This document shows positions 13,013 to 57,900 of a stretch of DNA of 64,000 nucleotides, piece after piece (the stretch's first letter is position 1; every line of letters begins with the position of its first letter). The notes under the pieces were generated by a model. That model was not told the DNA's origin, made no database searches, and saw nothing but the letters and a program-made list of their open reading frames with translations. Position numbers and translations under genes: made by a program. This stretch comes from Octopus sinensis (taxonomy: Eukaryota): positions 3,534,001 through 3,598,000 of the forward strand of contig NC_043026.1 in the NCBI RefSeq assembly GCF_006345805.1, read 5' to 3'.

Positions 13013-13045
13013 CTAAAAATAAAATTTAAGCAATAAAAACCAATA

Positions 13046-15919: not shown

Positions 15920-16116
15920 CAAATGACTACTGTCCCTTGGCTTCTTTCTTTGGCATCCAAAAGGGGTGAGTATAAGTTGGGAGTAAGCATGCACAGAGAA
16001 AAATGCTATCTTGTTTCGGGTGGACCTAACCAATCTGGAAAGGTAGCGGGATTCAGGTTCTGAGAAAACTCCGCTGCCCCGGTATGTAGGATGACATGGA
16101 TTTGGACTGGCTCCCT
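15920..16116 (-). CDS. Carboxypeptidase gene 1 exon (197 nt, phase 1-0): (E)GASPNPCHPTYRGSGVFSEPESRYLSRLVRSTRNKIAFFSVHAYSQLILTPFGCQRKKPRDSSHL
   Basis: Acceptor tacatttcag, donor GTAAGT. Contains GAS..PC..TY.G...FSEPE and HAYSQ (Zn ligand His196). Confidence 0.95.
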
Positions 16117-16579
16117 CTGAAATGTAGGCACAGAGACAGGGAGCAAGAAATAAGCAAGCAAATAAGATACAGAGAGGGAGATAGGGAGGGAGAGAGAGAT
16201 TGACTGAGGGGAAACAGATGAACAAAAACAAAAAGGGAATAAACTCCCTGCCCCATACACCCACCCACCCACACACACACACACACACACATTGAATGCA
16301 ACATCTTTTAGGTCAAAGGAACTACTTAATCGGAGTTGAGGTGGGGGTCAACTCTGAGGAAGGATACGACGACCACAAAGGGTTGCAGAACACTACATGT
16401 CTCTGTTGTAGAAACTGTGTGAAGCTTTGAAACAGAAACACAGTGGTGTCCAGTTTTTGCAAGACGATTCACCAACATACACAGTATATGAAACTCTATG
16501 CAAAATACGCAATATATATATATATATAGATATATATATATATATATATATATACTGTATATATATATATATACTGTAT

Positions 16580-20558: not shown

Positions 20559-21052
20559 CGGTCTGGGAATCTAAACTGCGTTCTTACGACTGCAAGTCCG
20601 CTGCCCTAACCACTGGGCCATTGCACCTCCACGACTGCTGCTGCTGCTGTTGTTGTTGTTGTTGTTGAGTAACAAGATGGGTAAGGGTGATTAGGTGATG
20701 GTCTAGGGCTTAGGGGAGGGAGACCCCAGACCTTGGAAAAAAAAAAAAACTTTGGTTGTCTTGTTGTAGTCGATGGCTCTTTGTTGATGCCCGACACCAC
20801 TGGGAGGTGGCCCTCAAAGTCGCTGGAAATGGAGATCTCCAGGTCCAAATTCTTGGACGGCCGCTGGTGCTGCCGTCCCTGTTGCTTCTATTGTTACTGC
20901 CACCGATGACGATGATGACAATAGTGGTAGTAATGAGGATGATAGATTGATAAATAGGGAAAACAGACTAACAAAGAGACAGGTAGACGTGCAAACAGGT
21001 ACACAGGTAGGCAGATAAATAGGTAGACTAGTCAGAAAATAGACAAGTAGAC

Positions 21053-24000
21053 CAGTGCTTTTCAAACATTTTGCTGGAGCTGAACCCCAAGGAAACATTC
21101 CACTGGCTCGAGGAACCCCTGTGCAATAATTTAATAGTCTTATGCACACATATCTGCACAGGAGAATTAAGAATTACTGTCGATTTTAGCAGTTTTGTAA
21201 CTTCTTGCGGAACCCCTGCACTGTACTGGCTGAACACTAAGGTTCCACGGAACCCTGGTTGAAAACCACTGAGTTAGACTGGTAGTCAGTTAGACACTAG
21301 TTAGACAAGTGCTTTTCAAACTTTTTGCTGGAGCGGAACCCCAAGGAAACATTCCACTGGCTCGAGGAACCCCTGTGCAATAATTTAATAGTCTTATGCA
21401 CACATATCTGCACAGGAGAATTAAGAATTACTGTCGATTTTAGCAGTTTTGTAACTTCTTGCGGAACCCCTGGACTGCACTGGCGGAACCCTAAGGTTCC
21501 GCGGAACCCTGGTTGAAAACCATTGAGTTAGACACAGTCAGTTAGACACTAGTTAGACCAGTGCTTTTCAATCTTTTTGCTGGAGCGGAACCCCAAGGAA
21601 ACATTCCACTGGCTCGAGGAACCCCTGTGCAATAATTTGATTGTCTTATGCACACATATCTGCACAGGAGACTTAAAAATTACTGCCGATTTTAGCAGTT
21701 TTGTAACTTCTTGCGGAACCCTGGTTGAAAACCACTGAGTTAGACACAGTCAGTTAGACACTAGTTAGACCAGTGCTTTTCAATCTTTTTGCTGGAGCGG
21801 AACCCCAAGGAAACATTCCACTGGCTCGAGGAACCCCTGTGCAATAATTTGATTGTCTTATGCACACATATCTGCACAGGAGAATTAAAAATTACTGCCG
21901 ATTTTAGCAGTTTTGTAACTTCTTGCGGAACCCCTGCACTGTACTGGCGGAACCCTGGTTGAAAACCACTGATTTAGACACAGTCAGTTAGACACTAGTT
22001 AGACCAGTGCTTTTCAATCTTTTTGCTGGAGCGGAACCCCAAGGAAACATCCCACTGGCTCGAGGAACCCCTGTGCAATAATTTAATAGTCTTATGCACA
22101 CATACCTGCACAGGAGACTTAAAAATTACTGCCGATTTTAGCAGTTTTGTAACTTCTTGCGGAACCCCTGCACTGTACTGGCGGAACCCTGGTTGAAAAC
22201 CACTGAGTTAGACACAGTCAGTTAGACACTAGTTAGACCAGTGCTTTTCAATCTTTTTGCTGGAGCGGAACCCCAAGGAAACATCCCACTGGCTCGAGGA
22301 ACCCCTGTGCAATAATTTAATAGTCTTATGCACACATACCTGCACAGGAGAATTAAAAATTACTGCCGATTTTAGCAGTTTTGTAACTTCTTGCGGAACC
22401 CCTTGACTGTACTGGCAGAACCCTAAGGTTCCGCGGAACCCTGGTTGAAAACCACTGAATTAGACACAGTCAGTTAGGCACTAGTTAGACCAGTGCTTTT
22501 CAATCTTTTTGCTGGAGCGGAACCCCAAGGAAACACCCACTGGCTCGAGGAACCCCTGTGCAATAATTTAATAGTCTTATGCACACATATCTGCACAGGA
22601 GACTTAAAAATTACTGCCGATTTTAGCAGTTTTGTAACTTCTTGCGGAACCCCTGCACTGTACTGGCGGAACCCTGGTTGAAAACCACTGAGTTAGACAC
22701 AGTCAGTTAGACACTAGTTAGACCAGTGCTTTTCAATCTTTTTGCTGGAGCGGACCCCAGGAAACATCCACTGGCTCGAGGAACCCCTGTGCAATAATTT
22801 AATAGTCTTATGCACACATATCTGCACAGGAGACTTAAAAATTACTGCCGATTTTAGCAGTTTTGTAACTTCTTGCGGAACCCCTGCACTGTACTGGCGG
22901 AACCCTGGTTGAAAACCACTGAGTTAGACACATCAGTTAGACACTAGTTAGACCAGTGCTTTTCAATCTTTTTGCTGGAGCGGAACCCCAGGAAACATCC
23001 CACTGGCTCGAGGAACCCCGTGCAATAATTTAATAGTCTATGCACACATATCTGCACAGGAGACTTAAAAATTACTGCCGATTTTAGCAGTTTTGTAACT
23101 TCTTGCGGAACCCCTGCACTGTACTGGCGGAACCCTGGTTGAAAACCACTGAGTTAGACACAGTCAGTTAGACACTAGTTAGACCAGTGCTTTTCAATCT
23201 TTTTGCTGGAGCGGAACCCCAAGGAAACATCCCACTGGCTCGAGGAACCCCTGTGCAATAATTTAATAGTCTTATGCACACATATCTGCACAGGACTTTA
23301 AAATTACTGCCGATTTTAGCAGTTTTGTACTTCTTCTTGCGGAACCCCTGCACTGTACTGGCGGAACCCTGGTTGAAAACCACTGAGTTAGACACAGTCA
23401 GTTAGACACTAGTTAGACCAGTGCTTTTCAATCTTTTTGCTGGAGCGGAACCCCAAGGAAACATCCACTGGCTCGAGGAACCCCTGTGCAATAATTTAAT
23501 AGTCTTATGCACACATATCTGCACAGGAGACTTAAAATTACTGCCGATTTTAGCAGTTTTTGTAATTCTTGCGGAACCCCTGCACTGTACTGGCGGAACC
23601 CTGGTTGAAAACCACTGAGTTAGACACAGTCAGTTAGACACTAGTTAGACCAGTGCTTTTCAATCTTTTTGCTGGAGCGGAACCCCAAGAAACATCCCAC
23701 TGGCTCGAGGAACCCCTGTGCAATAATTAATAGTCTTATGCCACACATATCTGCACAGGAGACTTAAAAATTACTGCCGATTTTAGCAGTTTTGTAACTT
23801 CTTGCGGAACCCCTGCACTGTACTGGCGGAACCCTGGTTGAAAACCACTGAGTTACACAGTCATTAGACACTAGTTAGACCACGTGCTTTTCAATCTTTT
23901 TGCTGGAGCGGAACCCCAAGGAAACATCCCACTGGCTCGAGGAACCCCTGTGCAATAATTTAATAGTCTTATGCACACATACCTGCACAGGAGAATTAAA

Positions 24001-25789
24001 AATTACTGCCGATTTTAGCAGTTTTGTAACTTCTTGCGGAACCCCTGCACTGTACTGGCGGAACCCTGGTTGAAAACCACTGAGTTAGACACAGTCAGTT
24101 AGACACTAGTTAGACCAGTGCTTTTCAATCTTTTTGCTGGAGCGGAACCCCAAGGAAACATCCCACTGGCTCGAGGAACCCCTGTGCAATAATTTAATAG
24201 TCTTATGCACACATATCTGCACAGGAGACTTAAAATTACTGCCGATTTAGAGCGTTTTGTAACTTCTTGCGGAACCCCTGCACTGTACTGGCGGAACCCT
24301 GGTTGAAAACCACTGAGTTAGACACAGTCAGTTAGACACTAGTTAGAACAGTGCTTTTCAATCTTTTTGCTGGAGCGGAACCCCAAGGAAACATCCCACT
24401 GGCTCGAGGAACCCCTGTGCAATATTTAATAGTCTTATGCACACATATCTGCACAGGAGACTTAAAATTACTGCCGATTTTAGCAGTTTTGTAACTTCTT
24501 GCGGAACCCCTGCACTGTACTGGCGGAACCCTGGTTGAAAACCACTGAGTTAGACAGTCAGTAGACACTAGTTAGACCAGTGCTTTTCAATCTTTTTGCT
24601 GGAGCGGAACCCCAAGGAAACATCCCACTGGCTCGAGGAACCCCTGTGCAATAATTTAATAGTCTTATGCACACATATCTGCACAGGAGACTTAAAAATT
24701 ACTGCCGATTTTAGCAGTTTTGTAACTTCTTGCGGAACCCCTGCACTGTACTGGCGGAACCCTGGTTGAAAACCACTGAGTTAGACACAGTCAGTTAGAC
24801 ACTAGTTAGACCAGTGCTTTTCAATCTTTTTGCTGGAGCGGAACCCCAAGGAAACATCCCACTGGCTCGAGGAACCCCTGTGCAATAATTTAATAGTCTT
24901 ATGCACACATACCTGCACAGGAGAATTAAAAATTACTGCCGATTTTAGCAGTTTTGTAACTTCTTGCGGAACCCCTGCACTGTACTGGCGGAACCCTGGT
25001 TGAAAACCACTGAGTTAGACACAGTCAGTTAGACACTAGTTAGACCAGTGCTTTTCAATCTTTTTGCTGGAGCGGAACCCCAAGGAAACATCCCACTGGC
25101 TCGAGGAACCCCTGTGCAATAATTTAATAGTCTTATGCACACATATCTGCACAGGAGACTTAAAAATTACTGCCGATTTTAGCAGTTTTGTAACTTCTTG
25201 CGGAACCCCTGCACTGTACTGGCGGAACCCTGGTTGAAAACCACTGAGTTAGACACAGTCAGTTAGACACTAGTTAGACCAGTGCTTTTCAATCTTTTTG
25301 CTGGAGCGGAACCCCAAGGAAACATCCCACTGGCTCGAGGAACCCCTGTGCAATGATTTAATAGTCTTATGCACACATACCTGCACAGGAGACTTAAAAA
25401 TTACTGCCGATTTTAGCAGTTTTGTAACTTCTTGCGGAACCCCTGGACTGTACTGGCAGAACCCTAAGGTTCCGCGGAACCCTGGTTGAAAACCACTGAT
25501 TTAGACACAGTCAGTTAGGCACTAGTTAGACCAGTGCTTTTCAATCTTTTTGCTGGAGCAGAACCCCCAAGGAAACATTCCACTGGCTCGAGGAACCCCT
25601 GTGCAATAATTTGATTGTCTTATGCACACATATCTGCACAGAAGAATTAAAAATTACTGCCGATTTTAGCAGTTTTGTAACTTCTTGCGGAACCCCTGCA
25701 CTGTACTGGCGGAACCCTGGTTGAAAACCACTGAGTTAGACACAGTCAGTTAGACTAAGGTTCCACAGAACCCTGGTTGAAAACCACTG
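21053..25789 (+). repeat. Satellite of ~20 hAT-type MITE units (~230-255 bp) flanked by an 8-bp TSD
   Basis: Each unit is CAGTGCTTTTCAA...TTGAAAACCACTG plus a ~33-bp (agttagac)-rich spacer. AAGTAGAC occurs at 21045-21052 and 25790-25797. Confidence 0.92.
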
Positions 25790-32570: not shown

Positions 32571-32930
32571 CGACAGGCTTCTTTCAGTTTCCGTCTACCA
32601 AATCCACTCACAAGGCTTCGGTCGGCCCGAGGCTATAGCAGAAGACACTTGCCCAAGATGATACGCAGTGGGACTGAACCCGGAACCATGTGGTTGGTTA
32701 GCAAGCTACTTACCACACAGCCACTCCTGCGCCTATATATATATATACATATATACGATGGGCTTCTTTCAGTTTCCGTCTACCAAATCCACTCACAAGG
32801 CTTCGGTCGGCCCGGGGCTATAGCAGAAGACACTTGCCCAAGATGCCACACAGTGGGACTGAACCCGGAACCATGTGGTTGGTTAGCAAGCTACTTACCA
32901 CACAGCCACTCCGGCGCCTATATGATTGAC
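31900..32930 (-). mobile_element. Stack of family A SINE copies
   Basis: Repeated head, body and tail motifs, reverse-complemented. Confidence 0.8.
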
Positions 32931-33018
32931 TAAAAATCCACATAGGAAACGTCCCAAAATTGTTGTAAACCAATGGGTGAAGCAAAGAATAAGAAAAATT
33001 TAAGGAGGTATATCTTAC

Positions 33019-33117
33019 ACTTTCAATGACTTTTAGGGTGGAAGCAATTGCGATCCATTCACGGCTGTGCATTCCTGCTTCAACGATGATTGTGTCCTTT
33101 CCAGGGCCAACGGAAAA
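33019..33117 (-). CDS. Carboxypeptidase gene 1 exon (99 nt, phase 0-0): FSVGPGKDTIIVEAGMHSREWIAIASTLKVIES
   Basis: Acceptor tttcaaacag, donor GTAAGA. G.HSREW carries Zn ligands His69 and Glu72 plus Arg71. Confidence 0.95.
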
Positions 33118-35293
33118 CTGTTTGAAATTGAAAATACAGATTAGCAAAGGTTTTACAGCATGGCAGACTGGGTTACATTCTTTTGGAGCTGTGGTGTGTT
33201 GGTGCTTCTGTTTGGTGGTAATGTGTTGTAGAGTAATGTGGAAACGGTGGTTTGGTGTCATCTTGCAGTGTTGCAGTATGGTATGGTGGTATGGTATGGT
33301 GACGTGGTGGTGTACTGTGCTGTTGTGAAGGCAGCTAGCTGGCAGAACCGTTAGCACACCAGGCGAAATGCTTAGGAGTATTTCATCTGCCGCTGTTACG
33401 TTCTGAGTTCAAATTCCGCCGAGGTCGACATTGCCTTTCATCCTTTCGGGGTCAATAAATTAAGTACCAGTTACGCACTGGGGTCGATATAAATAGGTAT
33501 TTCATCTGCCGCTACGTTCTGAGTTCAAATTCCACCGAGGTTAACTTTGCCTTTCATCCTTTCGGGGTCGATTAAATAAGTACCAGTTAAGTACTGGGGT
33601 CGATATAATCGGCTTAATCCGTTTGTCTGTCCTTGTTTGTCCCCTCTGTGTTTAGCCCCTTGTGGGTAGTAAAGAAATAGGTATTTCGTCTGTCGTTACG
33701 TTCTGAGTTCAAATTCCGCCGAAGTCGACTTTGCCTTTCATCCTTTCGACTTAATCCGTTTGTCTGTCCTTGTTTGTCCCCTCTGTGTGTAGCCCCTTGT
33801 GGGCAGTGAAGAAATTGGTATACAGTGTTGTTGTGTAGAAGAACTGATATAAGATTGTTATACTGTAGTTTTGGGGTATGAACATGCACAAGTAGGTGGA
33901 CTGAAAAGTTTATAACTTGAGTATGAAGGGGTGAGACTAGAACTGGGAAACCTTGTATTCATTAATTTTATCCCTTATCAATAACTACATAGTTTCTTTC
34001 TGAGCAATCACACACAAACACACACACACATTTGTACATATATATATTAGAGACCTCCTTCGGTCACGACACTGACCATGGGATTGCACCTAGAAAGTTA
34101 CCCTCCCAGGCACAAGTCTGGGCAAGGTTGTTTATGGAAGACCAGCAGTCGCCCATGCATACCGGCCTCTGCTCTCCACGCCACCAGTGTTATCCAAGGG
34201 AAAGGCAAAGTGCTTTTCTAGTTGCTGTTGTTTGTTTGTTTGTTTGTTTGTTTGTTGAGTGAAGCGGTCTTCGTCCCTTGGGAGAAGTCCGAAACGAGGT
34301 CTTTTGCTATTTGTAAGACCCGCAGAAGAGAAATCAGATCAACCCCCGACACCAAGAGCATTGACGGATGGATGAATGCGCATCCAGGCTCAGCGGTTGC
34401 GTAGGAAGTCGGGGACAAGAAACAGGATGAAAGAGTGAGAGAAAGTTGGGGTGAAAGAGTACAACAGGGGTCGCCACCACCCTCTGCCGGAGCCTCGTGG
34501 AGCCTTAGGTGTTTTTGCTCAATAAACACATACAACGCCTGATCTGGGGATCGAAACCGTGATCCTCCGACCGCGAGTCCGCTGCACTAACCACTGGGCC
34601 ATTGCACCTCCACACACACATATATATAAGAAAATAAAGGAGCAACAATTAACCCTTAGAAGTTGATTCTTAGTATTAAAAGCTTTAGGTGTTTTTGCAC
34701 AATAAACACACACAACGTCTGGTCTGGGAATCAAAACCGCGATCCTCCGACCACGAGTCCACTGGGCCATTACGCCTCCACTGCTCTGCTATTGTTGTCT
34801 GTAAAAAGTCAACACAGTTGTCCTTGTGCTTTGATAAAATTCATTAAATGTTTGTGGTTATTCAGTTACCCATTTTCATTCACCACCACAGACCCATTTT
34901 CATTCACCAGCTCAACCATTCACCACCACAGACCAGCCCACAACCTTCAGACTGCGACGTGGTTATCTCTGCTTAACAATTTGAAAGTGGGGCTTCTACT
35001 GTCTACTCCAATGAACTGTGACAGATATTTTATCTTGAGATTAGAGATAAATACAAAGCTGAATTGAATGAATGAATGAATATATATATATAAATATGTG
35101 TGTATGTATGTACAGGTATGAAAATATATATGCATGTACGTATATGTATATATATATATAAATATGTGTGTATGTATGTATGTACACGTATGAAAATATA
35201 TAAGCATGTATGTATATGTATGTACATATATATACATTTATATATGCGTGCATGTATATGTATACAAATGTATGTTATGTATATGTGTGTATG

Positions 35294-35331
<38 letters not shown>

Positions 35332-35516
35332 TATATAATTATAAATATTAGGGAATAAATCCAAATTTACAGGGAAAAAAATCAGATTTAGGATTAAATC
35401 CAATTTTATAGTAAAATATTATAAAATATTATTAGAGACAAAACCACTATTTTGCAAAACAAACAAGGAAAGACTTAATCAATACATAAAATTTTAATAA
35501 ATAGTCAAAAAAACCG

Positions 35517-35559
35517 CCACTACAATTGTTTCTTGTCTTGATCGACAATCTTCAGGTGG
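35517..35559 (-). ncRNA. Minimal type I hammerhead ribozyme (host pre-mRNA strand)
   Basis: CCAC-CTGAAGA-TTGTC gatcaa GACAA-GAAAC AATT GTA-GTGG: canonical core, 5-bp stem II, palindromic CAATTG stem III, GUA triplet. Confidence 0.8.
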
Positions 35560-35614
35560 ACTTCCAATAAGTCAGTTTCAAATTATGAATTTTGGAAACT
35601 GACTTATTGGAAGT

Positions 35615-35656
35615 CCACCTGAAGATTGTCGATCAAGACAAGAAACAATGTAGTGG
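35615..35656 (+). ncRNA. Minimal type I hammerhead ribozyme (mirror copy)
   Basis: CCAC-CTGAAGA-TTGTC gatcaa GACAA-GAAAC AAT GTA-GTGG. Confidence 0.75.
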
Positions 35657-35777
35657 CGGTTTTTTGACTATTTATTAAAATTTTATGTATTGATTAAGTC
35701 TTTCCTTGTTGTTTTGCAAAATAGTGGTTTTGTCACTATAATATTTTATATATATATACATATATATATATATTATG

Positions 35778-41659: not shown

Positions 41660-42140
41660 TGTGTTTGTTTGTGTGTCTGTGTTTGATAGAATAAGTACTA
41701 GGCTTACAAAGACTAAGTCCTGGGGGTCGATTTGCTCGACTAAAAAGGCGGTGCTCCAGCATGGCCGCAGTCAAATGACTGAAACAAGTAAAAGAGACCG
41801 ATAGAATAAGTACTAGGCTTACAAAGACTAAGTCCTGGGGGTCGATTTGCTCGACTAAAAGGCGAGGCGGTGCTCCAGCATGGCCGCAAGTCAAATGACT
41901 GAAACAAGTAAAAGAGACCGATAGAATAAGTACTAGGCTTACAAAGACAAGTCTCTGGGGGTCGATTTGACTGACTAAAGGCGGTGCTCCAGCATGGCCA
42001 CAGTCAAATGACTGAAACAAGTAAAAGAGACCGATAGAATAAGTACTAGGCTTACAAAGAATAAGTCTTGGGGGGTCGATTTGCTCGACTAAAAGCGGGT
42101 GGTGCTCCAGCATGGCCACAGTCAAATGACTGAAACAAGT
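41420..42140 (+). mobile_element. Family A SINE with its tail segment (~110 bp) repeated four times
   Basis: gatagaataagtactaggcttacaaaga...gactgaaacaagtaaaagag recurs four times. Confidence 0.85.
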
Positions 42141-42359
42141 AAAAGAGTAAATAATTAAGAAAAAATGAAACTAAAATGGTTCCGAAATCAATTTTTTTTC
42201 CTCTACCATTTAAGTACTTTTCATCTTGGTTTCTAGTTCCATCCAATATTGAAATGGGGACACACAGACATGCGCATACCACACCACACACACACACACA
42301 CACATTTTTGTCATTGTCTTGTATGTTTGTTAGCATTTCACCACTGGCATTTCACCATG

Positions 42360-42405
<46 letters not shown>

Positions 42406-42829
42406 GCGTGTGTGCGTGTGCATGTGTGTGTGTGTGTGTGCGTGTGTGTGCGTGCATGTGTGTGCATGTGTGTGTGTGCGTGTGTATGTGTGCGTGCGTG
42501 TGTGTGTGTGTGTGTGGTGAATAGCTGCATATGCGTACACACACAAACATAAATATCTTTATACATAACGAGCTTCTTTCAGTTTCCTTCCACGAAATCC
42601 ATTCACAAGGCTTTGATTGGTCCAGTCCGATAGAAGAAGACACTTGACCAAAGTGACATGAAAATACATTGAAAAGTACCTTAGGAATTAGAACCCAGGT
42701 TTGAAATTTCCCCAAGACACCTGATGAAGGCTGGAGGGTATATCAGCTGAAATGTTGTGTTAACAACAAACAAGATGAGGACAACTATCCGTCAAATGGA
42801 AATAATTCCTCATCTCTTAAATATAGAAC

Positions 42830-42858
42830 TGGAATAATAATAATAATGATAATAGTGA

Positions 42859-43292: not shown

Positions 43293-43540
43293 TAATAATA
43301 TAAAAAAGTACCTTAGGAATGAGAACTCAGGTTTGAAATATCCCCAAGACACCTGATGAAGGCTGGAAGGTATATCAGCCGAAATGTTGTGTTAACAACA
43401 AACAAAATGAGGAGAAATATCCATCAAAAGTTAAAAAAATGTGCATAATTCCTCATCTCTTAAATATAGAACCACTTTCTCTGTTGTTCTTACAGTTTCA
43501 CTGCATTCAAACTTCACTTTCTTGTCTGTAAATCACCGTC

Positions 43541-44477: not shown

Positions 44478-44933
44478 GTTTAACGTCCGCTTTCCATGCT
44501 AGCATGGGTTGGACGGTTCAACCGGGGTCTGGGAAGCCAGGCGGCTTCACCAGGCTCTAGTCTGATTTAGCAGTTTTTCTACAGATGGATGCCCTTCCTA
44601 ACGCCAACCAGTCCGAGAGGGTAGTGGGTGCCTTTTACGTGCCACTGGCACAGGTGCTAGACGAGGCTGGCTACGGCCACAATCGGATGGTGCTTTTTAC
44701 GTGCCACCGGCACAGAGGCCAGGCGAGGCTGGCTACGGCCACAATCGGATGGTGCCTTTTACATGCCACCGGCACCTAAATATCTGCATTGTATTTATTT
44801 ATAGACATAGATATTTATATCTACATTGTAGATATTTATAGACAAACAACACATAAGAGATTTTATCATTCTATATTTAAGAGATGAGGAATTATGTACA
44901 TTATTTACGTTATTTACATTAATTACGTTATTT

Positions 44934-47215
44934 GTGTTAACAACAAACAAGATCGGGACAAATATCCGTCAAGTGTAAAGTGTTAACAACAAACAAGATG
45001 AGGACAAATATCCGTCAAATGTAATGTGTTAACAGCAAACAAGATGTGGACAAATATCCGTCAAGTGTAAAGTGTTAACAACAAACAAGATGAGGACAAA
45101 TATCCGTCAAATGTAAAGTGTTAACAGCAAACAAGATGAGGACAAATATCCGTCAATTGTAAAGTGTTAACAACAAACAAGATGAGGACAAATATCCGTC
45201 AAGTATAAAGTGTTAACAATAAACAAGATGTGGACAAATATCCGTCAATTGTAAAGTGTTAACAACAAACAAGATGAGGACAAATATCCGTCAAGTGTAA
45301 AGTGTTAACAACAAACAAGATGAGGACAAACATCCGTCAATTGTAAAGGTAAAAAAACAAGATGAGGACAAATATCCGTCAAGTGTAAAGTGTTAACACA
45401 AACAAGATGAGGACAAACATCCGTCAAATGTAAAGTGTTAACAACAAACAAGATGAGGACAAATATCCGTCAAGTTTAAAGTGTTAACAACAAACAAGAT
45501 GAGGACAAACATCCGTCAAATGTAAAGTGTTAAAAACAAACAAGATGAGGACAAATATCCGTCAAGTGTAAAGTGTTAACAACAAACAAGATGAGGACAA
45601 ACATCCGTCAAATGTAAAGTGTTAAAAACAAACAAGATGAGGACAAATATCTGTCAAATGTAAAGTGTTATCAACAAGCAAGATGAGGACAAATATCCGT
45701 CAATTGTAAAGTGTTAACAACAAACAAGATGAGGACAAATATCCGTCAAGTGTAAAGTGTTAACAACAAACAAGATGTGGACAAATATCCGTCAAATGTA
45801 AAGTGTTATCAACAAGCAAGATGAGGACAAATATCCGTCAAATGTAAAGTGTTAACAACAAACAAGATGAGGACAAATATCTGCCAATTGTAAAGTGTTA
45901 ACAACAAACAAGATGAGGACAAATATCCGTCAAGTGTAAAGTGTTAACAACAAACAAGATGTGGACAAATATCCGTCAAATGTAAAGTGTTATCAACAAG
46001 CAAGATGAGGACAAATATCCGTCAAATGTAAAGTGTTAACAACAAACAAGATGAGGACAAATATCCATCAAATGGAAAAGTGTTAACAACAAACAAGATG
46101 AGGACAAATATCCGTCAAATGTAAAGTGTTAACAACAAACAAGATGAGGACAAATATCCGTCAAATGTAAAGTGTTAACAACAAACAAGATGAGGACAAA
46201 CATCCGTCAAATGTAAAGTGTTAACAACAAACAAGATGAGGACAAACATCCGTCAAATGTAAAGTGTTAACAACAAACAAGATGTGGACAAATATCCGTC
46301 AAATGTAAAGTGTTAAAAACAAACAAGATGAGGACAAATATCTGTCAAATGTAAAGTGTTAAAAACAAATAAGATGAGGACAAATATCTGTCAAATGTAA
46401 AGTGTTAAAAACAAACAAGATGAGGACAAATATCTGTCAAATGTAAAGTGTTATCAACAAGCAAGATGAGGACAAATATCCGTCAAATGTAAAGTGTTAA
46501 CAACAAGCAAGTTGAGGACAAATATCCGTCAAATGTAAAGTGTTAACAACAAACAAGATGAGGACAAACATCCGTCAAATGTAAAGTGTTAACAACAAAC
46601 AAGATGAGGACAAATATCCGTCAAGTGTAAAGTGTTAAAAACAAACAAGATGAGGACAAATATCTGTCAAATGTAAAGTGTTATCAACAAGCAAGATGAG
46701 GACAAATATCCGTCAAATGTAAAGTGTTAACAACAAACAAGATGTGGACAAATATCCGTCAAGTGTAAAGTGTTAACAACAAACAAGATGAGGACAAACA
46801 TCCGTCAAATGTAAAGTGTTAACAACAAACAAGATGAGGACAAATATCCGTCAAGTGTAAAGTGTTAACAACCAACAAGATGAGGACAAACATCTGTCAA
46901 ATGTAAAGTGTTAACAACAAACAAGATGAGGACAAATATCCGTCAAGTGTAAAGTGTTAACAACAAGCAAGATGTGGACAAACATCCGTCAAATGTAAAG
47001 TGTTAACAACAAACAAGATGAGGACAAATATCCGTCAAGTGTAAAGTGTTAACAACAAGCAAGATGAGGACAAACATCCGTCAAATGTAAAGTGTTAACA
47101 ACAAGCAAGTTGAGGATAAATATCCGTCAAATATAAAGTGTTAACAACAAGCAAGTTGAGGACAAATATCCGTCAAGTGTAAAGTGTTAACAACAAGCAA
47201 GATGAAGACAATGCA
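44934..47215 (+). repeat. 46-bp minisatellite, ~50 copies (short second block at ~53826-54190)
   Basis: Unit GTGTTAACAACAAACAAGATGAGGACAAATATCCGTCAAATGTAAA equals the segment directly 3' of the HHR in the PLE-derived family. Confidence 0.95.
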
Positions 47216-47908
47216 AAGTGTAAACTGACATAGCAGACATACAAACATAGTAAATGTACCTATTTCTTTATAGTCTGAAAAAACAAACATCCTTAATCAA
47301 TTTTCAACCATTAATTGGAGCCTCATTAGAGGTGTCTACATCACTTGACAAATCTCAGAAAAACAAGTTGCCATTCTGTTTATATACAGATGAAATCCAG
47401 TAACTCCAGAGAACTGGGGCGACTAACGTGCATGCTATTAGTGTTTCATGCTTTATTTAACATTAGTGGTCTACCAACGAGGAACTCATTTCACACAAAG
47501 TTCATTTATATATATATATATAGTAGACAGTTTGGAGATGATGTACAGGTATTAGTTTCATGGTCCCTTGGCTTGGCAGTGTTGAAGAGGGTGACTGTAG
47601 TGGTAAAAGTTTTGTCTCATGTACTGTTGTAGAGGCAGAAATCCACTGAGTCGAAACAGGTGAGTGCCAAGTAGGTTAGTGCCAAATGCTTGAATGAACT
47701 TTCTGTGAAATGAGTTCCTCGTTGGCAGACCACTAATATTAAATAAAGCATGAAACACTAAAACAATTGTACCAAATTACCGGAGTCATTCTTGTTGCTT
47801 ATTTTTTATAATAATCACCCCACAAATTTTTATGGATAACACCATTCAAAATTCCGGTGCATCTAAATTAAGTACCATATTCATTTGAATCTAAATTGTT
47901 GCTGAACT

Positions 47909-47940
<32 letters not shown>

Positions 47941-49101
47941 TTATTTGAGGGAATAAAATCCAAACTTACAAGGAAAAAAATTCAATTTAGAAGTACTAAA
48001 TCAAATTTCACACTATATAATATATATATATAAAATTAGAAAAAAACTCACCTTTTATCAATTCAAAATGAATAATTAAATTACACCATCTAGAAAATTA
48101 CATATAATAGAAAAGTTAAAATTAAAATAACAATAAAATGTAAATATTAAGTAAATTGCAAAAATAATAATAAAAATGTAATAAAAATGTATATAATAGG
48201 TAGAAAAACATTTTTATTATTATTTTGGCAATTTACTTAATATTTACATTTTATTGTTATTTTAATTTTAACTTTTCTATATATGTAATTTTCTAGATGG
48301 TGTAATTTAATTATTCATTTTGAATTGATATAAGGTGTTTTTTTTCTAATCTTATATATAATATATATATAATTATAATAAAGGGTTAATTGCACACAAG
48401 TTGCTTAAACCACATACCGAAAATATTAGAAATAGCAGCCAAATAGGTTACCATTACTACTACTAGAAAAATAAGTCTCCACAAACAAACGGAGACTTAT
48501 TTTTCTAGTAGTAGTAATGGTACTTATTTGGCTGCTATTTCTAATATTTTCGGTATGTGGTTTAAGCAACTTGTTGCAATTACCCTTTATTATAATTATA
48601 TATAATCTTTACCGAATATGGTCCTTTCCATACCGAAAAAACTACAAGGTGAAATTTATTAATTTTATAAATTAATTATATTTCACCCTTATGTGTGTGT
48701 ATATATCTTTATATATAAAAGAGAGGTTTTGTGTCTGTCTCCTACGATTTAGATTCCTAACTACTCCCACATTTTGCGGTGCAGTTTAACCAAAACCGGG
48801 TATCTTATAGTCGTGATTCATATCGAGCCCTTCTGGGTATTAGCATGCGTCGACGATGAGTCTATGATTTTTAAAAAAATTTACCATCATTTTTTTCCAT
48901 TTTAATGCATTTTTTCGCTATTATATAAGGGAAGTAACTCTCTAAAAATGTCTACGATGAGTCAACGATTTAAAAAAAAATTTACCATAATTTTTTTTCC
49001 ATTTTAATGCATTTTTTGGCTATTTTTTGGCTATAACTCTCTAAAAACGCTTATATAGTTATTTCCCTTACAAACCCGAGCAACGCCGGCGATACTGCTA
49101 G

Positions 49102-49132
<31 letters not shown>

Positions 49133-50682
49133 AAAGGCTTAGTAAAATAAATTACTTTGCCGCATACTGAACTCATTAGAATAGCAGCTAAAAAACTTTT
49201 TAAGGCTATTTCTAATACTTAAAGAAAATCTCTCTCATATATAGTGTTTGCTTAATTCAACTCACAAAAGTTTGGGGTAAGGACATCGAAAAATCAAATG
49301 CTAAGGTTATTCGAGAACGTACGTTTCAAGATTAGTCAAAACAACATTTCTATCATCGGCTCAGAAATTCCTTGGTTTGGATTTGGAAACACTGAAAATA
49401 AGAACATACCCTTTCGAAGATCTGCTTCCAACTAACAGTGCCAACAAATTCAAAATAAGCAAGCGAAGAATCTCTGTTCTCCCCTTTCCACCAGCGTGGG
49501 TTAAAATCATCAAACAATATGCTTATTTCGGTAAAATCCGAAGCATTAATCAGAGGGAGATTAATTACAATTTCAACAATTGAGGGCAAAATTAATTAAT
49601 TATTAATCAATTTCACCAAGTGTTCAGTATGCAAAGGGACCATTCAAGGCGAATTCAAATTATTACATTATATAAAAGGGCTTAGTAAAATAAATTACTT
49701 TGCCGCATACTGAACTCATTAGAAATAGCAGCTAAAAAACTTTTTTAAGGCTATTTCTAATACTTAAAGAAAATCTCTCTCATATATAGTGTTTGCTTAA
49801 TTCAACTCACAAAAGTTTGGGGGTAAGGACATCGAAAAATCAAATGCTAAGGTTATTCGAGAACGTACGTTTCAAGATTAGTCAAAACAACATTTCTATC
49901 ATCGGCTCAGAAATTCCTTGGTTTGGATTTGGAAACACTGAAAATAAGAACATACCCTTTCGAAGATCTGCTTCCAACTAACAGTGCCAACAAATTCAAA
50001 ATAAGCAAGCGAAGAATCTCTGTTCTCCCCTTTCCACCAGCGTGGGTTAAAATCATCAAACAATATGCTTATTTCGGTAAAATCCGAAGCATTAATCAGA
50101 GGGAGATTAATTACAATTTCAACAATGAGTTAGGGGTTATGCAACAGTCTAAGGGATAAAGGTATCTGTAGGTACTACTAGTGTATTACCTAACTATGTA
50201 TAGGCCTTGCTGTAAGGTTAACAGTAGTTGGTAATTTAAATGGTAAACTGTGGTTTAGTATATTTTGATAAGAAAAGGAACGGAGGAACAATTAACTATT
50301 TTAAGTTGGTCATTGGTATTAAAAAGTCATAATTTAATTATAAAGAAATGGAGTAACAATTAACAATTAAAAGTTGATCACTGGAATTAAAAGGTCATAG
50401 ATTAATTGTAATTTAACTACAATTAAACGATGACCTTTTAATATATCAAGGATCAACTTCTCAGGGTTAATTGTTGCTCCTTCTTTTTTCTTATATGTTG
50501 TGTGTGTGTGTGGTGTGTGTGGAGGTGCAATGGCCCAGTGGTTAGGGCAGCAGACTCGCGGTCGTAGGATCGCGGTTTCGATTTCTAGACCAGACGTTGT
50601 GTGTGTTTAATGAGCGAAAACACCTAAAGCTTTTAATACCAAGGATCAACTTCTAAGGGTTAATTGTTGCTCCTTTTCTTCT

Positions 50683-50714
<32 letters not shown>

Positions 50715-53700
50715 GAGGTGCAATGGCCCAGTGGTTAGTGCAGCGGACTCGCGGTCGTAGGATCGCGGTTTCGATTCCCAGACCGGGCGTTGTGAGTGTT
50801 TATTGAGCGAAAACACCTAAAGCTCCACGAGGCTCCGGCAGGGGGTCGTGGCGATCCCTGCTGTACTCTTTCACCACAACTTTCTCTCACTCTTTCTTCT
50901 GTTGGCCTGCTTGCTTAGCCAGTGGGGTGACACCATTTAAAGGCTAAAACAATGCAAAGTGCATTGTGACCAGCGATGTGTAACAACATCTGATAGCCTG
51001 GTTGGTCACATGATCATGTGATATATATATATATATATTTTGGCGCAAATGTTCTTTTTTATACGCCACCGAGTTTACAATCCTGTAAATAATAGAAATG
51101 GTATTTTTATATAAGCTTAAAGCTTATGGCGATCACTGTGCAATGACTAAGGAAAATAGTCTAATAAAGGGGCATATAAGCCCTCGACAGAAGAGGGAGA
51201 CTTGAGAGACATGGGTTGGACGATTTTGACTGAGGGCTGGTGAACCAGATGGCTGCACCAGGCCCCAATCTTGATCTGGCAGAGTTTCTACAGCTGGATG
51301 CTCTTCCTAATGCCAACCACTCCAAGAGTGTAGTGGGTGCTTTTTATGTGCCACCAACACGGGGGCCAGTAAGGTGGTACTGGCAATGACCTAGCTCGAA
51401 TAAATTTACAAGTGCCACCAGCACAGGTGCCAGTGAAGCAACGTTGGTAACGATCATGCTCGAATGGTGCTCTTTTACGTGCCACTGGTACGGAAGGCAG
51501 TTGACTGCTCTGGCAACGATCACGCTCAGGTGGTGCTCTTGGCACCCTACTAGCACGGGCCACAAGTGCAGTAAGGTACGACGCTGGTACGATCACGCTC
51601 GAATGGTGCCCTTTAAATGCCACTGGTACGGAAGCCAGTTGGCTGCTCTGGCAATGATCACGCTCGGATGGTGCTCTTGGCACCCTACTAGCACGGGCAC
51701 AAGTGCCAGTTAGGCGATGCTGGTAACAATCATGTTCGAATGGTGCCCTTTTACGTGCCACGGGTACAGAAGCCAGTTGGCTGCTCTGGCAACGATCACG
51801 CTCGGATGGTGCTCTTAGCACCCTATTAGCACAGGCATAAGTGCCAGAAATATGTCACAACTATTTTAGTTGTAAAATACAAATATTTTAGAAAATAGCA
51901 TTTTGTTATTCCTGATTTTTAGATCTTAATGTTTACCTTTTAATTTTCTTAAAAATCAATTAAGAAATAGCATACCCTGCTATATTCATTACTTAATCAG
52001 CACTAGGTATTAAGAAATTTAATAACATAGACAAATTAAAAAAACTTGAATAAAATAATTTTTAAATTTCTATAATTATTACATAAATTCTATATATAGG
52101 TGCAGGAGTGGCTGTGTGGTAAGTAGCTTGCTAACCAACCACATGGTTCCGGGTTCAGTCCCACTGCGTGGCATCTTCTGCTATAGCTCCGGGGCGACCA
52201 ATGCCTTGTGAGTGGATTTGGTAGACGGAAACTGAAAGAAGCCTATCGTATATTGTATATATATATATGTGTGTGTGTGTTATGTCTGTGTTTGTCCCCC
52301 TAGCATTGCTTGACAACCGATGCTGGTGTGTTTACGTACCCGTCACTTAGCGGTTCGGCATAAGAGACCGATAGAATAAGTACTGGGCTTAAAAAGAATA
52401 AGTCCCGGGGTCGATTTGCTCGACTAAAGGCGGTGCTCCAGCATGGCCACAGTCAAATGACTGAAACAAGTAAAAGAATAAAAGAATAAAAAAAAAAGAA
52501 AGAATATCTAATGAAGTTATTAATTGTATACTTACTCTACAATAAATTTTAAGAATTTGGTAATTTTCACATCTTTTTCTACGAGAATTCTACTCCACCT
52601 AATCATCATCATCATCATCATTTAATGTCCATTTTCCATGCTAGCATGGGTAGGATGGTTCAACCGGGGTCTGGAAGCCATGGAGGCTGCACCAGGCTCC
52701 AGTCTGATCTGGCAGTGTTTCTACAGCTGGATGCCCTTCCTAATGCCAACCACTCCGAGAGTGTAGTGGGTGTTTTTTTACGTGCCACCGGCACAGGGGC
52801 CAGAGCAGGCTGGCAAGCGGCCATGGTCGGTTGGTGCTTTTACATGTCACCGACACGGGTGTCTTAACTACAATTTCCATTTGAATTTTTATTTTGATGC
52901 TGATGTACATGACTCAATAGGTCTATTTTTTGATATTATAATAATACCTTTATAGAAGCCTAATTTATTACACCCCATATAACCATACTTTACTCTTAAT
53001 ATGAAATATAAGATTTCCCCCAAAAATAATAATAATCTTATCTCTCTCTATATAAAGCTGAAGTTGTCTGTGTGCGCCAGGTTTGGTAGCCTTCAACTAA
53101 CACTATCTCCTCCGAGACCCTGCGGCACAAGTTGACCAAAATTGAGAGTATGATAGAAGGGTTGCTCTTCCCTCCGTAGAAGATAAAATTCAAATCGGAC
53201 CATGTTAACACCAAAAATTATTTACATCAAAAAGGTGCTTTTTTTTCTATGAAAATCCCTATTTTTTATGATTTTTTCACTGCTGTGTCGCCACTTTTCG
53301 GTGTATTTCAACCAGAAAAATGTTCACTTGAAGAGAATAACAAGCTCCATAATGCAAAATCTTTACTTTTCAAAAATTCCAATTCTAAAGGGGTGAAACA
53401 AACCCAAGCAACGCCGGGCGATACTGCTAGTTTCTCCATATTTTCATTTTATAATTACAATTTTGGTTACCTCACTTCTATTCTAATTTAAGGATTTTGG
53501 CATGTGAATCAAAGCCTTATTTACTGGGAATCTCCTCTTTAAAAAAATCTTCTAAATCTCTTTAATTAATATTAGAACCTGATAAAAATAGATAATAATA
53601 TTTAAATTCTTGAACCTGGAACCATGTGGTTGGTAAGCAAGCTACTTACCACACAGCTACACCTACACCAAATGCTAATTTGATTAATATCAATTTAAAA

Positions 53701-54884
53701 CCAGTGGTCTAGCATATTGAAAAATCTGAATATTCAGAAAAATTATATTACATACATATAAGAGGGATGACCACTATCTAGCAGAAGGGATGTCCACTTA
53801 GTGGTCATTCCTCTGATATGTATGACAAATATCCGTCAAATGTAAAGTGTTAACAACAAACAAGTTGAGGACAAACATCCGTCAAATGTAAAGTGTTAAC
53901 AACAAACAAGATGAGGACAAATATCCGTCAAATGTAAAGTGTTAACAACAAACAAGTGGAGGACAAACATCCGTCAAATGTAAAGTGTTAACAACAAACA
54001 AGATGAGGACAAATATCCGTCAAGTGTAAAGTGTTAACAACAAGCAAGATGAGGACAAACATCCGTCAAATGTAAAGTGTTAACAACAAGCAAGTTGAGG
54101 ATAAATATCCGTCAAATATAAAGTGTTAACAACAAGCAAGTTGAGGACAAATATCCGTCAATGTAAAGTGTTACACAAGCAAGATGAAGACAATGCAAAG
54201 TGTAAACTGACACAGCAGACATACAAACATAGTAAATGTACCTATTTCTTTATAGTCTGAAGAAACAAACATCCTTAATCAATTTTCAACCATTAATTGG
54301 AGCCTCATCAGAGGTGTCTACATCACTTGACAAATCTCAGAAAAACAAGTTGCCATTCTGTTTATATACAGATGAAATCCAGTAACTCCAGAGAACTGGG
54401 GCGACTAACGTGCATGCTATTGGTTTCATGCTTTATTTAACATTAGTGGTCTACCAACGAGGAACTCATTTCCACACAAAGTTCATTTATATATATATAT
54501 AGTAGACAGTTTGGAGATGATGTACAGGTATTAGTTTCATGGTCCCTTGGATTGGCAGTGTTGAAGAGGGTGACTGTAGTGGAAAAGTTTTGTTTCATGT
54601 ACTGTTGTAGAGGCAGAAATCCACTGAGTCGAAACAGGTGAGTGCCAAGTAGGTTAGTGCCAAATGCTTGAATGAACTTTCTGTGAAATGAGTTCCTCGT
54701 TGGCAGACCACTAATATTAAATAAAGCATGAAACACTAAAACAATTGTACCAAATTACCGAGTCATTCTTGTTGCTTATTTTTTATAATAATCACCCCGC
54801 AAATTTTTATGGATAACACCATTCAAATTCCGGTGCATCTAAATTAAGTACCATATTCATTTGAATCTAAATTGTTGCTGAACT

Positions 54885-54929
<45 letters not shown>

Positions 54930-57900
54930 TATATTATATATAATTATTATTTGAGGAATAAAATCCAAACTTACAAGGAAAAAAATTCAATTTAGAAGTA
55001 CTAAATCAAATTTCACACTATATAATATATATATATAAAATTAGAAAAAAACCCACCTTTTATCAATTCAAAATGAATAATTAAATTACACCATCTAGAA
55101 AATTACATATAATAGAAAAGTTAAAATTAAAAATAACAAAAAATGTAATATTAAGTAAATTGCAAAAAATAATAAAAATGTAATAAAAATGTATATAATA
55201 AGTAGAAAAACATTTTTATTATTATTTTTGCAATTTACTTAATATTTACATTTTATTGTTATTTTAATTTTAACTTTTCTATTATATGTAATTTTCTAGA
55301 TGGTGTAATTTAATTATTCATTTTGAATTGATATAAGGTGTTTTTTTTCTAATCTTATATATATATATATATATAATTATAATAAAGGGTTAATTGCAAC
55401 AAGTTGCTTAAACCACATACCGAAAATATTAGAAATAGCAGCCAAATAGGTTACCATTACTACTACTAGAAAAATAAGTCTCCACAAACAAACAGGAGAC
55501 TTATTTTTCTAGTAGTAGTAATGGTAACTTATTTGGCTGCTATTTCTAATATTTTCGGTATGTGGTTTAAGCAACTTGTTGCAATTAACCCTTTATTATA
55601 ATTATATATAATCTTTACCGAATATGGTCCTTTCCATACCGAAAAAACTACAAGGTGAAATTTATTAATTTTATTAAATTAATTATATTTCACCCCTTAT
55701 GTGTGTGTATATATCTTTATATATAAAAGAGAGGTTTTGTGTCTGTCTCCTACGATTTAGATTCCTAACTACTCCCACATTTTGCGGTGCAGTTTAACCA
55801 AAACCGGGTATCTTATAGTCGTGATTCATATCGAGCCCTTCTGGGTATTAGCATGCGTCTACGATGAGTCTATGATTTAAAAAAAAATTTACCATCATTT
55901 TTTTCCATTTTAATGCATTTTTTCGCTATTATATAAGGGAAGTAACTCTCTAAAAATGTCTACGATGAGTCAACGATTTAAAAAAAAATTTACCATAATT
56001 TTTTTTCCATTTTTAATGCATTTTTTGGCTATTTTTTGGCTATAACTCTCTAAAAACGCTTATATAGTTATTTCCCTTACAAACCCGAGCAACGCCGGGC
56101 GATACTGCTAGTATATATATATATATATATATATATATAATGAGTTAGGGGTTATGCAACAGTCTAAGGGATAAAGGTATCTGTAGGTACTACTAGTGTA
56201 TTACCTAACTATGTATAGGCCTTGCTGTAAGGTTAACAGTAGTTGGTAATTTAAATGGTAAACTGTGGTTTAGTATATTTTGATAAGAAAAGGAACGGAG
56301 GAACAATTAACTATTTTAAGTTGGTCATTGGTATTAAAAAGTCATAATTTAATTATAAAGAAATGGTAACAATAAACAATTAAAAGTTGATCACTGGAAT
56401 TAAAAGGTCATAGATTAATTGTAATTTAACTACAATTAAACGATGACCTTTTAATATATCAAGGATCAACTTCTCAGGGTTAATTGTTGCTCCTTCTTTT
56501 TTCTTATATATGTGTGTGTGTGTGTGGAGGTGCAATGGCCCAGTGGTTAGGGCAGCAGACTCGCAGTCGTAGGATCGCGGTTTCGATTTCTAGACCAGAC
56601 TTTGTGTGTGTTTTAATGAGCGAAAACACCTAAAGCTTTTAATACCAAGGATCAACTTCTAAGGGTTAATTGTTGCTCCTTTTCTTCTTATAATATATTG
56701 TGTGTGTGTGGTGTGGTGTGGAGGTGCAATGGCCCAGTGGTTAGTGCAGCGGACTCGCGGTCGTAGGATCGCGGTTTCGATTCCCAGACCGGGCATTGTG
56801 AGTGTTTATTGAGCGAAAACACCTAAAGCTCCACGAGGCTCCGGCAGGGGGTCGTGGCGATCCCTGCTGTACTCTTTCACCACAACTTTCTCTCACTCTT
56901 TCTTCTGTTGGCCTGCTTGCTTAGCCAGCGGGGTGACACAATTTAAAGGCTAAAACAATGCAAAGTGCATTGTGACCAGCGATGTGGTAACAACATCTGA
57001 TAGCCTGTTTGGTCACATGATCATGTGATATATATATATATATTTTGGCGCAAATGTTCTTTTTTATACGCCACCGAGTTTACAATCCTGTAAATAATAG
57101 AAATGGTATTTTTTATATAAGCTTAAGGCTTATGGCGATCACTGTGCAATGACTAAGGAAAATAGTCTAATAAGGGGCATATAAGCCCTCGACAGAAGAG
57201 GGAGACTTGAGAGACATGGGTTGGACGATTTTGACTGAGGGCTGGTGAACCAGATGGCTGCACCAGGCCCCAATCTTGATCTGGCAGAGTTTTTTCTACA
57301 GCTGGATGCTCTTCCTAATGCCAACCACTCCAAGAGTGTAGTGGGTGCTTTTTATGTGCCACCGACATGGGGGCCAGTAAGGTGGTACTGGCAATGACCT
57401 AGCTCGAATAAATTTACAAGTGCCACCAGCACAGGTGCCAGTGAAGCAACGTTGGTAACGATCATGCTCGAATGGTGCTCTTTTACGTGCCACTGGTACG
57501 GAAGGCAGTTGACTGCTCTGGCAACGATCACGCTCAGGTGGTGCTCTTGGCACCCTACTAGCACGGGCACAAGTGCCAGTAAGGCGACGCTGGTAACGAT
57601 CACGCTCGAATGGTGCCCTTTAAATGCCACTGGTACGGAAGCCAGTTGGCTGCTCTGGCAATGATCACGCTCGGATGGTGCTCTTGGCACCCTACTAGCA
57701 CGGGCACAAGTGCCAGTTAGGCAATGCTGGTAACAATCATGCTCGAATGGTGCCCTTTTACGTGCCACGGGTACGGAAGCCAGTTGGCTGCTCTGGCAAC
57801 GATCACGCTCGGATGGTGCTCTTAGCACCCTATTAGCACAGGCATAAGTGCCAGAAATATGTCACAACTATTTTAGTTGTAAAATACAAATATTTTAGAA

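Follow-up and report, generated by a model that had tools for sequence, protein, structure and literature searches.

A 46-bp minisatellite in Octopus sinensis whose unit begins at the predicted hammerhead cut of a putative Penelope-like element

Minimal hammerhead ribozymes (min-HHRs) of Penelope-like elements (PLEs) occur as single dispersed motifs or as opposite-strand pairs 100–700 bp apart (PMC4209133). PLE insertions include partial tandems, often have an inverted 5′-truncated copy directly at their 5′ end and a 30–40-bp ‘tail’ at one end only, and are biased towards AT-rich or microsatellite targets; non-autonomous relatives give rise to multicopy head-to-tail insertions (PMC8557442). 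In a rotifer, PLE pseudo-long terminal repeats (pLTRs) measure 181–218 bp, a 31-bp tail is present at one inverted pLTR, inverted and direct pLTRs overlap, and target-site duplications (TSDs) are 8–10 bp long or absent (PMC3846280). The anole PLE protein, in purified form, cuts both strands of DNA and extends them, and its reverse transcriptase (RT) initiates internally, 3′ of the hammerhead and without primer-template homology, at two adjacent sites, the tail being the sequence between them (PMC11167929). In this system, the one that has been reconstituted, ribozyme cleavage was dispensable for insertion and no transcript ends were found at the cut site (PMC11167929). Animal non-LTR (long terminal repeat) retrozymes, finally, consist of tandem 150–450-bp repeats that each contain a type I hammerhead (PMC7229834; bioRxiv 10.64898/2026.07.22.740005). 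The present analysis concerns a 64,000-nucleotide stretch of the Octopus sinensis genome (assembly GCF_006345805.1, contig NC_043026.1, positions 3,534,001–3,598,000 of the forward strand; hereafter the window), in which a 46-bp minisatellite starts, unit after unit, at the predicted hammerhead cut of a dispersed element of ~170 bp (hereafter the parent). The array bears on two questions, the in vivo role of PLE min-HHRs and the making of PLE tandem and inverted structures.

Tandem Repeats Finder (TRF) places the array at 44934–47211, with a period of 46, 49.6 copies, 93% matches, no indels and the consensus GTGTTAACAACAAACAAGATGAGGACAAATATCCGTCAAATGTAAA. Manual splitting yields 50 units, 46 of them exactly 46 nt long; the last is degenerate and 42 nt long, with TGTAAAC at its end at 47225. 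The unit corresponds to positions 87–132 of the parent consensus, from the predicted hammerhead cut to TGTAAA, and the array and parent consensuses are identical at all 46 positions. A pattern search of the window with the first 26 nt of the unit returned 60 occurrences against 0 expected, and outside the arrays the pattern was seen five times, once in each dispersed copy of the parent.

The phase of the unit can be read by comparing these two contexts. In the parent, the unit is embedded as ...GAAACGTT/GTGTTAAC...CAAATGTAAA/YAATGTA... (slashes mark breakpoints or cuts here and below; Y, C or T), whereas all 49 internal junctions of the array read TGTAAA/GTGTT, the unit start being the predicted cut (U17/G1.1). 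The bases flanking the breakpoints differ on both sides (T in the parent against A in the array on the left, C or T against G on the right), and without microhomology at the junction the unit phase is therefore unambiguous. Upstream ribozyme sequence is missing as well: a blastn search of the consensus against the window found nothing of positions 1–84, the ribozyme part, near the array, and the unit itself lacks the CUGANGA/GAAA core (unit table, descriptor scan). A first-pass annotation of this DNA, made from the sequence alone, had described an array starting at a hammerhead cleavage site, with a junction free of microhomology and of upstream ribozyme sequence, and this observation is confirmed, the cleavage site being a predicted one.

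The ribozyme itself is predicted in the five copies of the parent, which read GACAC-CUGAUGA-A-GGCUGG(8-nt loop)UCAGCC-GAA-ACGU-U/GUGUU. In the standard hammerhead numbering, which is long established (and restated in PMC4209133), helix I comprises 5 bp and helix II 6 bp, an extra unpaired A stands between A9 and G10.1, and the pair 10.1–11.1 is G-C in three copies and G-U in two. There is no helix III; a palindromic A15.1-C15.2-G16.2-U16.1 lies directly between GAA and U17, and two copies with A-U-G-U at 15.1–16.1 can still self-pair through wobble pairs. U17 is followed by G1.1, which places the predicted scissile bond exactly before GTGTT. Intact catalytic boxes (CUGAUGA or CUGACGA...GAAA) in type I order, together with U17, are kept in four of the five copies, that at 4649–4810 having CCGAUGG. 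A custom descriptor recovered six motifs in the window against 0.2 expected from Markov-simulated windows. Published PLE min-HHRs have four further features outside the search descriptor of the study that described them, namely an extra unpaired nucleotide, G10.1-C11.1, a long helix II with a short helix I, and palindromic 15.x/16.x positions (PMC4209133). The parent motif, which the first-pass annotation had likened to the min-HHRs of PLE termini, displays every published sequence feature of that class, its fold and cut being predicted.

Among the five near-identical copies, 98% of the helix cells are paired, against 18–55% with slid partners, and all substitutions in helices are wobble-compatible transitions; no pair is changed on both sides, and covariation thus speaks neither for nor against the fold. 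Minimum-free-energy and cofold predictions recover helices I and II but not a dimeric helix III, a pairing that would not be expected to win out in thermodynamic folding. Rfam gave no hammerhead at gathering thresholds over the whole window or in E-value mode over 13000–13750, a miss that is expected because the motif has no helix III; the only Rfam matches in the window are weak ones of microRNA (miRNA) models to hairpins of transposable elements (TEs). A second hammerhead-like family, at 35440–35740, reads CCAC-CUGAAGA-UUGUC...GACAA-GAAA-CAAUUGUA/GUGG with a palindromic ACAAUUGU. It forms a near-perfect head-to-head palindrome (arms 96–98% complementary, 9-nt centre) between (TA)n tracts, its predicted cut lies ~93 nt from the 3′ end, and by analogy it looks like a textbook PLE inverted insertion from uncut RNA.

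The absence of a ribozyme from the 46-bp unit bears on one possible origin of the array, namely rolling-circle reverse transcription of a 46-nt circular RNA (circRNA) in which the 5′-OH produced by the ribozyme had been ligated to a 2′,3′-cyclic phosphate at A132. Circular RNA templates have been proposed for head-to-tail PLE tandems (PMC4209133) and retrozyme circRNAs are documented in animals (PMC7229834), but known ribozyme circles measure 150–1000 nt and the descriptor scan found no second hammerhead-like motif near A132, and such an origin is hardly credible.

The parent copies vary at their 3′ ends, which are GAAC, GAACTG, GAACTGTATTG or ~146, and none carries poly(A), features that fit internal initiation of reverse transcription. 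Their alignment shows one or two copies of the 9-mer AATGTAAAY. Four of the ten ends adjoin (AAT)n or (GAT)n, which is a plain count without formal statistics. The copies at 13046–13192 and 13552–13697 are head-to-head, with their 5′ ends facing each other across ~360 bp of microsatellite and other repeats, and those at 42671–42831 and 43304–43472 form a direct pair around a 468-bp (AAT)n. Both arrangements resemble the inverted and direct pLTR pairs of PLEs, and the (AAT)n is possibly captured ‘cargo’. As judged from its sequence, the parent is best explained as a short non-autonomous derivative, or solo pLTR, of a PLE, with a predicted minimal hammerhead of the dimer type. The ATG within CUGAUGA opens a 25-codon frame, MKAGGYISRNVVLTTNKMRTNIRQM (consensus 54–132, e.g., window positions 42724–42802), closed by the TAA of TGTAAA, which forms the last three bases of the unit (consensus 130–132); the consensus frame is otherwise open to the end of the element. 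The anole PLE is alike in that its open reading frame (ORF) also begins inside the hammerhead. A role of the 25-codon frame as a conserved coding N-terminus is ruled out, as it is short, stops at that TAA and is broken in several copies.

The layout of the array locus (Table 1) matches, by analogy, the published architecture of PLE insertions. The inverted 3′ end of the element that had been noticed before the array is real: it is a 5′-truncated copy that holds the 36-nt tail and part of the 9-mer region, and its 3′ end faces outward, to the left. Its inner end is the 9-mer micro-repeat (ATTATTTAC), the reverse complement of the parental AATGTAAAY, which abuts the first unit; the inverted block at 44869–44933 is thus directly followed by the direct block at 44934, and the two overlap by ~8 nt of parent sequence. 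Consensus 133–168 (36 nt) is present once, inverted, at the left end and is absent from the right end of the array, and its size and position suggest that it is the tail. The 3′ end of the unit therefore falls on the tail boundary, which had gone unnoticed. The left flank of the locus is AT-rich. An ACGTT just 5′ of the array was considered as a remnant of the AACGTT of the ribozyme and rejected, since it stems from an ATGT-to-ACGT variant of the 9-mer.

Table 1. Positions in the window of the 46-bp array, the parent copies and the associated fragments
Feature	Positions	Strand	Details	Evidence
46-bp minisatellite	44934–47225	+	50 units	TRF, pattern search, unit table, haplotype and lag analysis
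Inverted 5′-truncated copy of parent 3′ end	44869–44911	−	consensus 125–167	blastn, 95% over 43 nt
9-mer micro-repeat	44891–44933	−	×4.8; 18-bp period ×2.3	TRF rows 44891–44933 and 44892–44933
Secondary array	53824–54193	+	copy of last 8 units; starts mid-unit at GACAAATATCC	blastn, flank comparison
Parent copy	4649–4810	+	with tail; core mutated (CCGATGG); predicted cut 4726/4727	
Parent copy	13046–13192	−	intact core; GTGTT begins at 13120 on minus strand; 5′ end adjoins (GAT)n	
Parent copy	13552–13697	+	intact core; N7=C; helix I C-G to U-G; predicted cut 13637/13638; 3′ end at ~consensus 146, most of tail missing; 5′ end adjoins (AAT)n	
Parent copy	42671–42831	+	intact core; predicted cut 42756/42757; 3′ end adjoins 468-bp (AAT)n	
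Parent copy	43304–43472	+	intact core; predicted cut 43388/43389; 5′ end adjoins same 468-bp (AAT)n	

The distribution of the tail is also of consequence for an origin by serial homing, in which an endonuclease recognising the element end would have directed many insertions of cut, tail-less 46-nt templates beside a prior unit. PLEs commonly form tandems (PMC8557442), and the Penelope endonuclease recognises and cleaves DNA with its own tail region, the anole PLE nicking its own pLTR (PMC11167929). The units, however, lack the tail required for recognition in PMC11167929, it is improbable that dozens of insertions would all be perfectly seamless and leave neither target duplications nor remnants of the flanks, and the unit haplotypes described below reveal block-wise spread at the DNA level, all of which makes serial homing very unlikely.

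The reading preferred here, to which about an even chance of being correct is given, is a PLE-type insertion on ribozyme-cut RNA, with re-initiation by the RT and later expansion at the DNA level. Briefly, the locus would be a miniature double-ended PLE-type insertion at a broken target. A short cDNA primed by one DNA end at an outer start site would have become the inverted tail fragment. The other DNA end would have primed at an inner start site (after TGTAAA, consensus 132) on hammerhead-cut RNA, and the RT would have run out of template precisely at G87 (GTGTT). Once complete, this cDNA end would have acted as primer again for homology-independent initiation at 132, using the same cut RNA or a different one. 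At least one such round, and possibly several, would have created TGTAAA/GTGTT, and the two cDNAs would have been joined at ATTT/GTGTT. Unequal exchange would later have enlarged and rearranged the resulting small head-to-tail block into 50 units, and the right part of the array would have been copied again by a segmental duplication of ~7 kb. The unit would accordingly extend from a ribozyme-cut 5′ end to an internal start site, by analogy with the anole element. The distance from the unit end (132) to the element end (~168) is 36 nt, and that from the ATG in CUGAUGA to the element end is 115 nt, compared with 111–118 nt in the anole element. We infer cleavage in vivo, the use of two start sites, re-initiation by the RT and this order of events; the anatomy of the locus, its phase, the features of the motif and the DNA-level turnover are directly observed.

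What argues for an RNA end is that the direct block has its outer edge, and each unit its start, at one and the same phosphodiester, that the predicted cut falls there too, and that the other breakpoint is the tail boundary. Under random DNA breakpoints, the odds are ~1 in 46 to 1 in 170 per coincidence with the cut site. The lack of junction microhomology fits homology-independent initiation. Telomerase-like copying or template jumping had been proposed at the outset, and of this proposal an RT origin on cut RNA is favoured by the locus layout. Strict realignment in the manner of telomerase or the bacterial DRT2 system is excluded, since AACAC at the cDNA end calls for GUGUU as its partner and the RNA 3′ of A132 is CAAUG, a match at one of five positions. 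Homology-independent internal initiation by a PLE RT in vitro (PMC11167929) offers a better analogy than telomerase. A stronger version, in which a single retrotransposition laid down most or all of the array while the RT repeatedly ran off the cut end and re-initiated without base-pairing, appears quite unlikely; if true, satellite DNA would have been created de novo by a processive, protein-guided mode of repeat addition, and the array would stand as a footprint in the genome that proves in vivo cleavage by minimal hammerheads.

The same breakpoints can be set against pure coincidence, that is, an ordinary minisatellite in a rearranged copy for which the ribozyme is irrelevant and the match is due to chance and post-hoc selection. 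Tandem arrays have a high base rate in the window, cleavage is a prediction from a motif that Rfam does not recognise, and the secondary array shows that DNA-level cuts through the array fall at arbitrary phase. A chance origin would nevertheless have to place the unit start at one specific phosphodiester (odds of ~1 in 46 to 1 in 170), and would need separate explanations for the total absence of the 5′ 86 nt and for the inverted tail fragment and the unit end at the tail boundary, which together make up the published PLE architecture. Coincidence is thus considered improbable.

Subsequent growth of the array has left a clear DNA-level signature. The 50 units represent 29 haplotypes, and the double-mutant haplotypes C8A+C34T and A7T+A14G each recur in four to five non-adjacent units. 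Units at lag 2 differ less than adjacent ones (2.81 versus 3.22 differences, permutation p=0.017), and the best self-alignment of the array is found at a 92-bp offset, which indicates a higher-order periodicity. Recurrent haplotypes and 92-bp periodicity imply that most copies arose by DNA-level (unequal) exchange. For this reason, the phrase ‘rather than ordinary slippage’ in the first-pass annotation was too strong; the unequal-exchange signature bears on the growth of the array and not on that junction.

A hybrid origin is a serious alternative, possible though not probable. In this case, the RT would have made one insertion only (inverted tail fragment plus cut-site-ended direct copy), with the founding duplication and all growth taking place at the DNA level, by slippage and unequal exchange. 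DNA-level turnover is demonstrable here from the recurrent haplotypes and the lag-2 over lag-1 similarity. Tandem arrays that derive from TEs and have arbitrary boundaries abound in the window, e.g., a 384-bp array of transposase-like ORF fragments, and there may be a weak continuation of the parent past the last unit. On the other hand, the left breakpoint of the duplication must match the 5′ end of the insertion by chance (~1 in 46), the right one must land at the tail boundary too, and no junction microhomology favours that pair of breakpoints.

The secondary array was carried to its position by a segmental duplication (46839–49126 to 53824–56136, 96.5% over 2329 nt by blastn), the left breakpoint of which lies inside the primary array; its 5′ flank is unrelated to the primary locus. 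It is therefore a duplicate, a point missed in the first-pass annotation, and not an independent case of the unit phase; from it one can see that breaks made in the array by DNA rearrangement fall at arbitrary phase. The duplication as a whole is tandem and ~6–7 kb long (46839–53823 and 53824–~60000, 96.5% identity over the first 2.3 kb), and the internal repeats 50443–50824/56456–56830 and 51421–51847/57429–57854 belong to it.

Several points weigh against an insertion on ribozyme-cut RNA with RT re-initiation. Cleavage at the parent cut site is predicted from sequence, no compensatory change is seen at any pair among the five near-identical copies, published min-HHRs are poor cleavers in vitro, and the anole PLE gave no reads ending at its cut site (PMC4209133, PMC11167929). 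The window ORFs of at least 120 aa include no PLE RT or endonuclease (EN). At the array itself, TT closes the left flank and also precedes the cut in the parent; the outer left edge, where the blastn match starts at consensus position 85, is thereby fixed only to within 0–2 nt. No TSD stood out: of 1000 shuffles, 70 gave a flank-to-flank local alignment as good as the best one observed. Beyond the last unit, TGTAAAC-TG-ACATA is weakly like the parent continuation (42 of 500 shuffles are as good, which is not significant), a resemblance that would be equally in keeping with duplication of a stretch within a longer copy. The inner start site is deduced from the array locus itself, so that the argument is partly circular. 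DNA-level turnover means that the RT-made junctions may number as few as one, and the window is rich in other TE-derived tandem arrays, with a high base rate of ordinary tandem duplication. Finally, there is one independent locus only. The earlier reading as a whole is thus partly supported, its claim resting on that locus.

Min-HHRs in PLEs, tandem and inverted PLE insertions, and internal RT initiation are already known, and PLE parts have been reported to resemble satellites (bioRxiv 10.64898/2026.07.22.740005). We did not find a description in the literature of a satellite unit that runs from a ribozyme cut to an inner start site and excludes the ribozyme. The junction, unit and ribozyme/cut-site sequences had 0 exact matches in viral, metagenome and prokaryotic genome contigs, and no papers turned up when the sequences were looked for in the full text of the literature. 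If the insertion on cut RNA is true, the junctions are a natural footprint of in vivo cleavage and of RT re-initiation on a cut template, and the locus documents how the processing of a retroelement RNA can lead to satellite DNA. This reading makes a countable genome-wide prediction, namely that 5′ ends pile up at the cut site and 3′ ends at the two start sites, and the same prediction is applicable to any hammerhead-bearing family. The array is a single-locus lead of moderate interest, through which in vivo hammerhead cleavage and the formation of PLE tandems become directly countable in genome data.

Aside from the array and its parent, the window contains two minus-strand ORFs, 15791–16288 and 32818–33357, that match Pfam Peptidase_M14 (profile 139–209, E=4.9e-12, and profile 29–72, E=1e-4, in that order) and are, from these matches, probably exons of a minus-strand zinc carboxypeptidase gene. 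A k-mer-indexed protein search found no homologue of the two carboxypeptidase exons or of an ORF derived from a short interspersed element (SINE). The 384-bp tandem array occupies 18445–20558 (5.5 copies, 96%) and illustrates DNA-level amplification of a segment internal to a TE. Its minus strand repeatedly encodes ...LPHPPYSPDIAPSDFHLFRSLQNSLNGKNFNSLDDVKRYLDEFFAMKPPQFWEEGIFKLKERW, which resembles the C-terminus of a mariner/Tc1-type transposase but has no Pfam match at E≤0.01. Other long-period arrays have units of 234 bp (×17, 21048–25755), 109 bp (×6.9, 6183–6926), 264 bp (×3.5, 7283–8191) and 120 bp (×4, 41685–42147), and the custom descriptor found no hammerhead-like motif in them. Long perfect hairpins that lie within other repeats at 13289–13359 and 13425–13475 give weak, sub-threshold matches to miRNA precursor models (best 30 bits versus a gathering score of 100); in all likelihood they represent inverted repeats of TEs rather than miRNA genes.

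When compared with the PLE min-HHRs (PMC4209133), the parent shares the conserved boxes, the extra unpaired nucleotide, G10.1-C11.1, the long helix II and the short helix I, as well as the missing helix III and the palindromic core that implies a dimeric active form, and it likewise occurs as single motifs and as opposite-strand pairs. It differs in that no RT/EN ORF is linked to it in the window and in that cleavage here is predicted only. The new point relative to these motifs is not the ribozyme itself but a satellite unit that begins at its predicted cut site. With published PLE insertions (PMC8557442, PMC3846280, PMC11167929), the locus has in common the inverted truncated copy beside a direct tandem, the one-sided tail of 36 nt and the ~8-nt overlap of inverted and direct parts; the variable 3′ ends without poly(A), the ends that abut microsatellites and the absence of junction homology are likewise shared. 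In contrast, the unit is only 46 bp long and lacks the ribozyme, the promoter region and the tail, which makes the copies dead ends; there are 50 copies rather than two or three, and no TSD was found at the locus.

Animal retrozymes are similar in having tandem arrays tied to the pLTRs and hammerheads of PLEs, and they are regarded as satellites that stem from PLE parts and grew by unequal crossover. Retrozyme units, however, run from cut site to cut site, include the ribozyme and allow a circRNA, whereas the present unit runs from a cut site to an internal point; without a hammerhead in its unit, the array is not a retrozyme. Telomerase and the concatemeric cDNA of DRT2 (PMC12039810) are comparable in their repeated copying of a bounded template segment. 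Both rely on short product-template pairing (ACA motifs in DRT2, PMC12039810), which is impossible here, and in the octopus the 5′ boundary of the template would be the end of the RNA itself, produced by ribozyme cleavage. Finally, the 92-bp periodicity, the recurring variant haplotypes and the partial segmental duplication are typical of TE-derived minisatellites grown by unequal crossover, from which the array differs in that both founding breakpoints coincide with functional landmarks of a retroelement RNA and the junction shows no microhomology.

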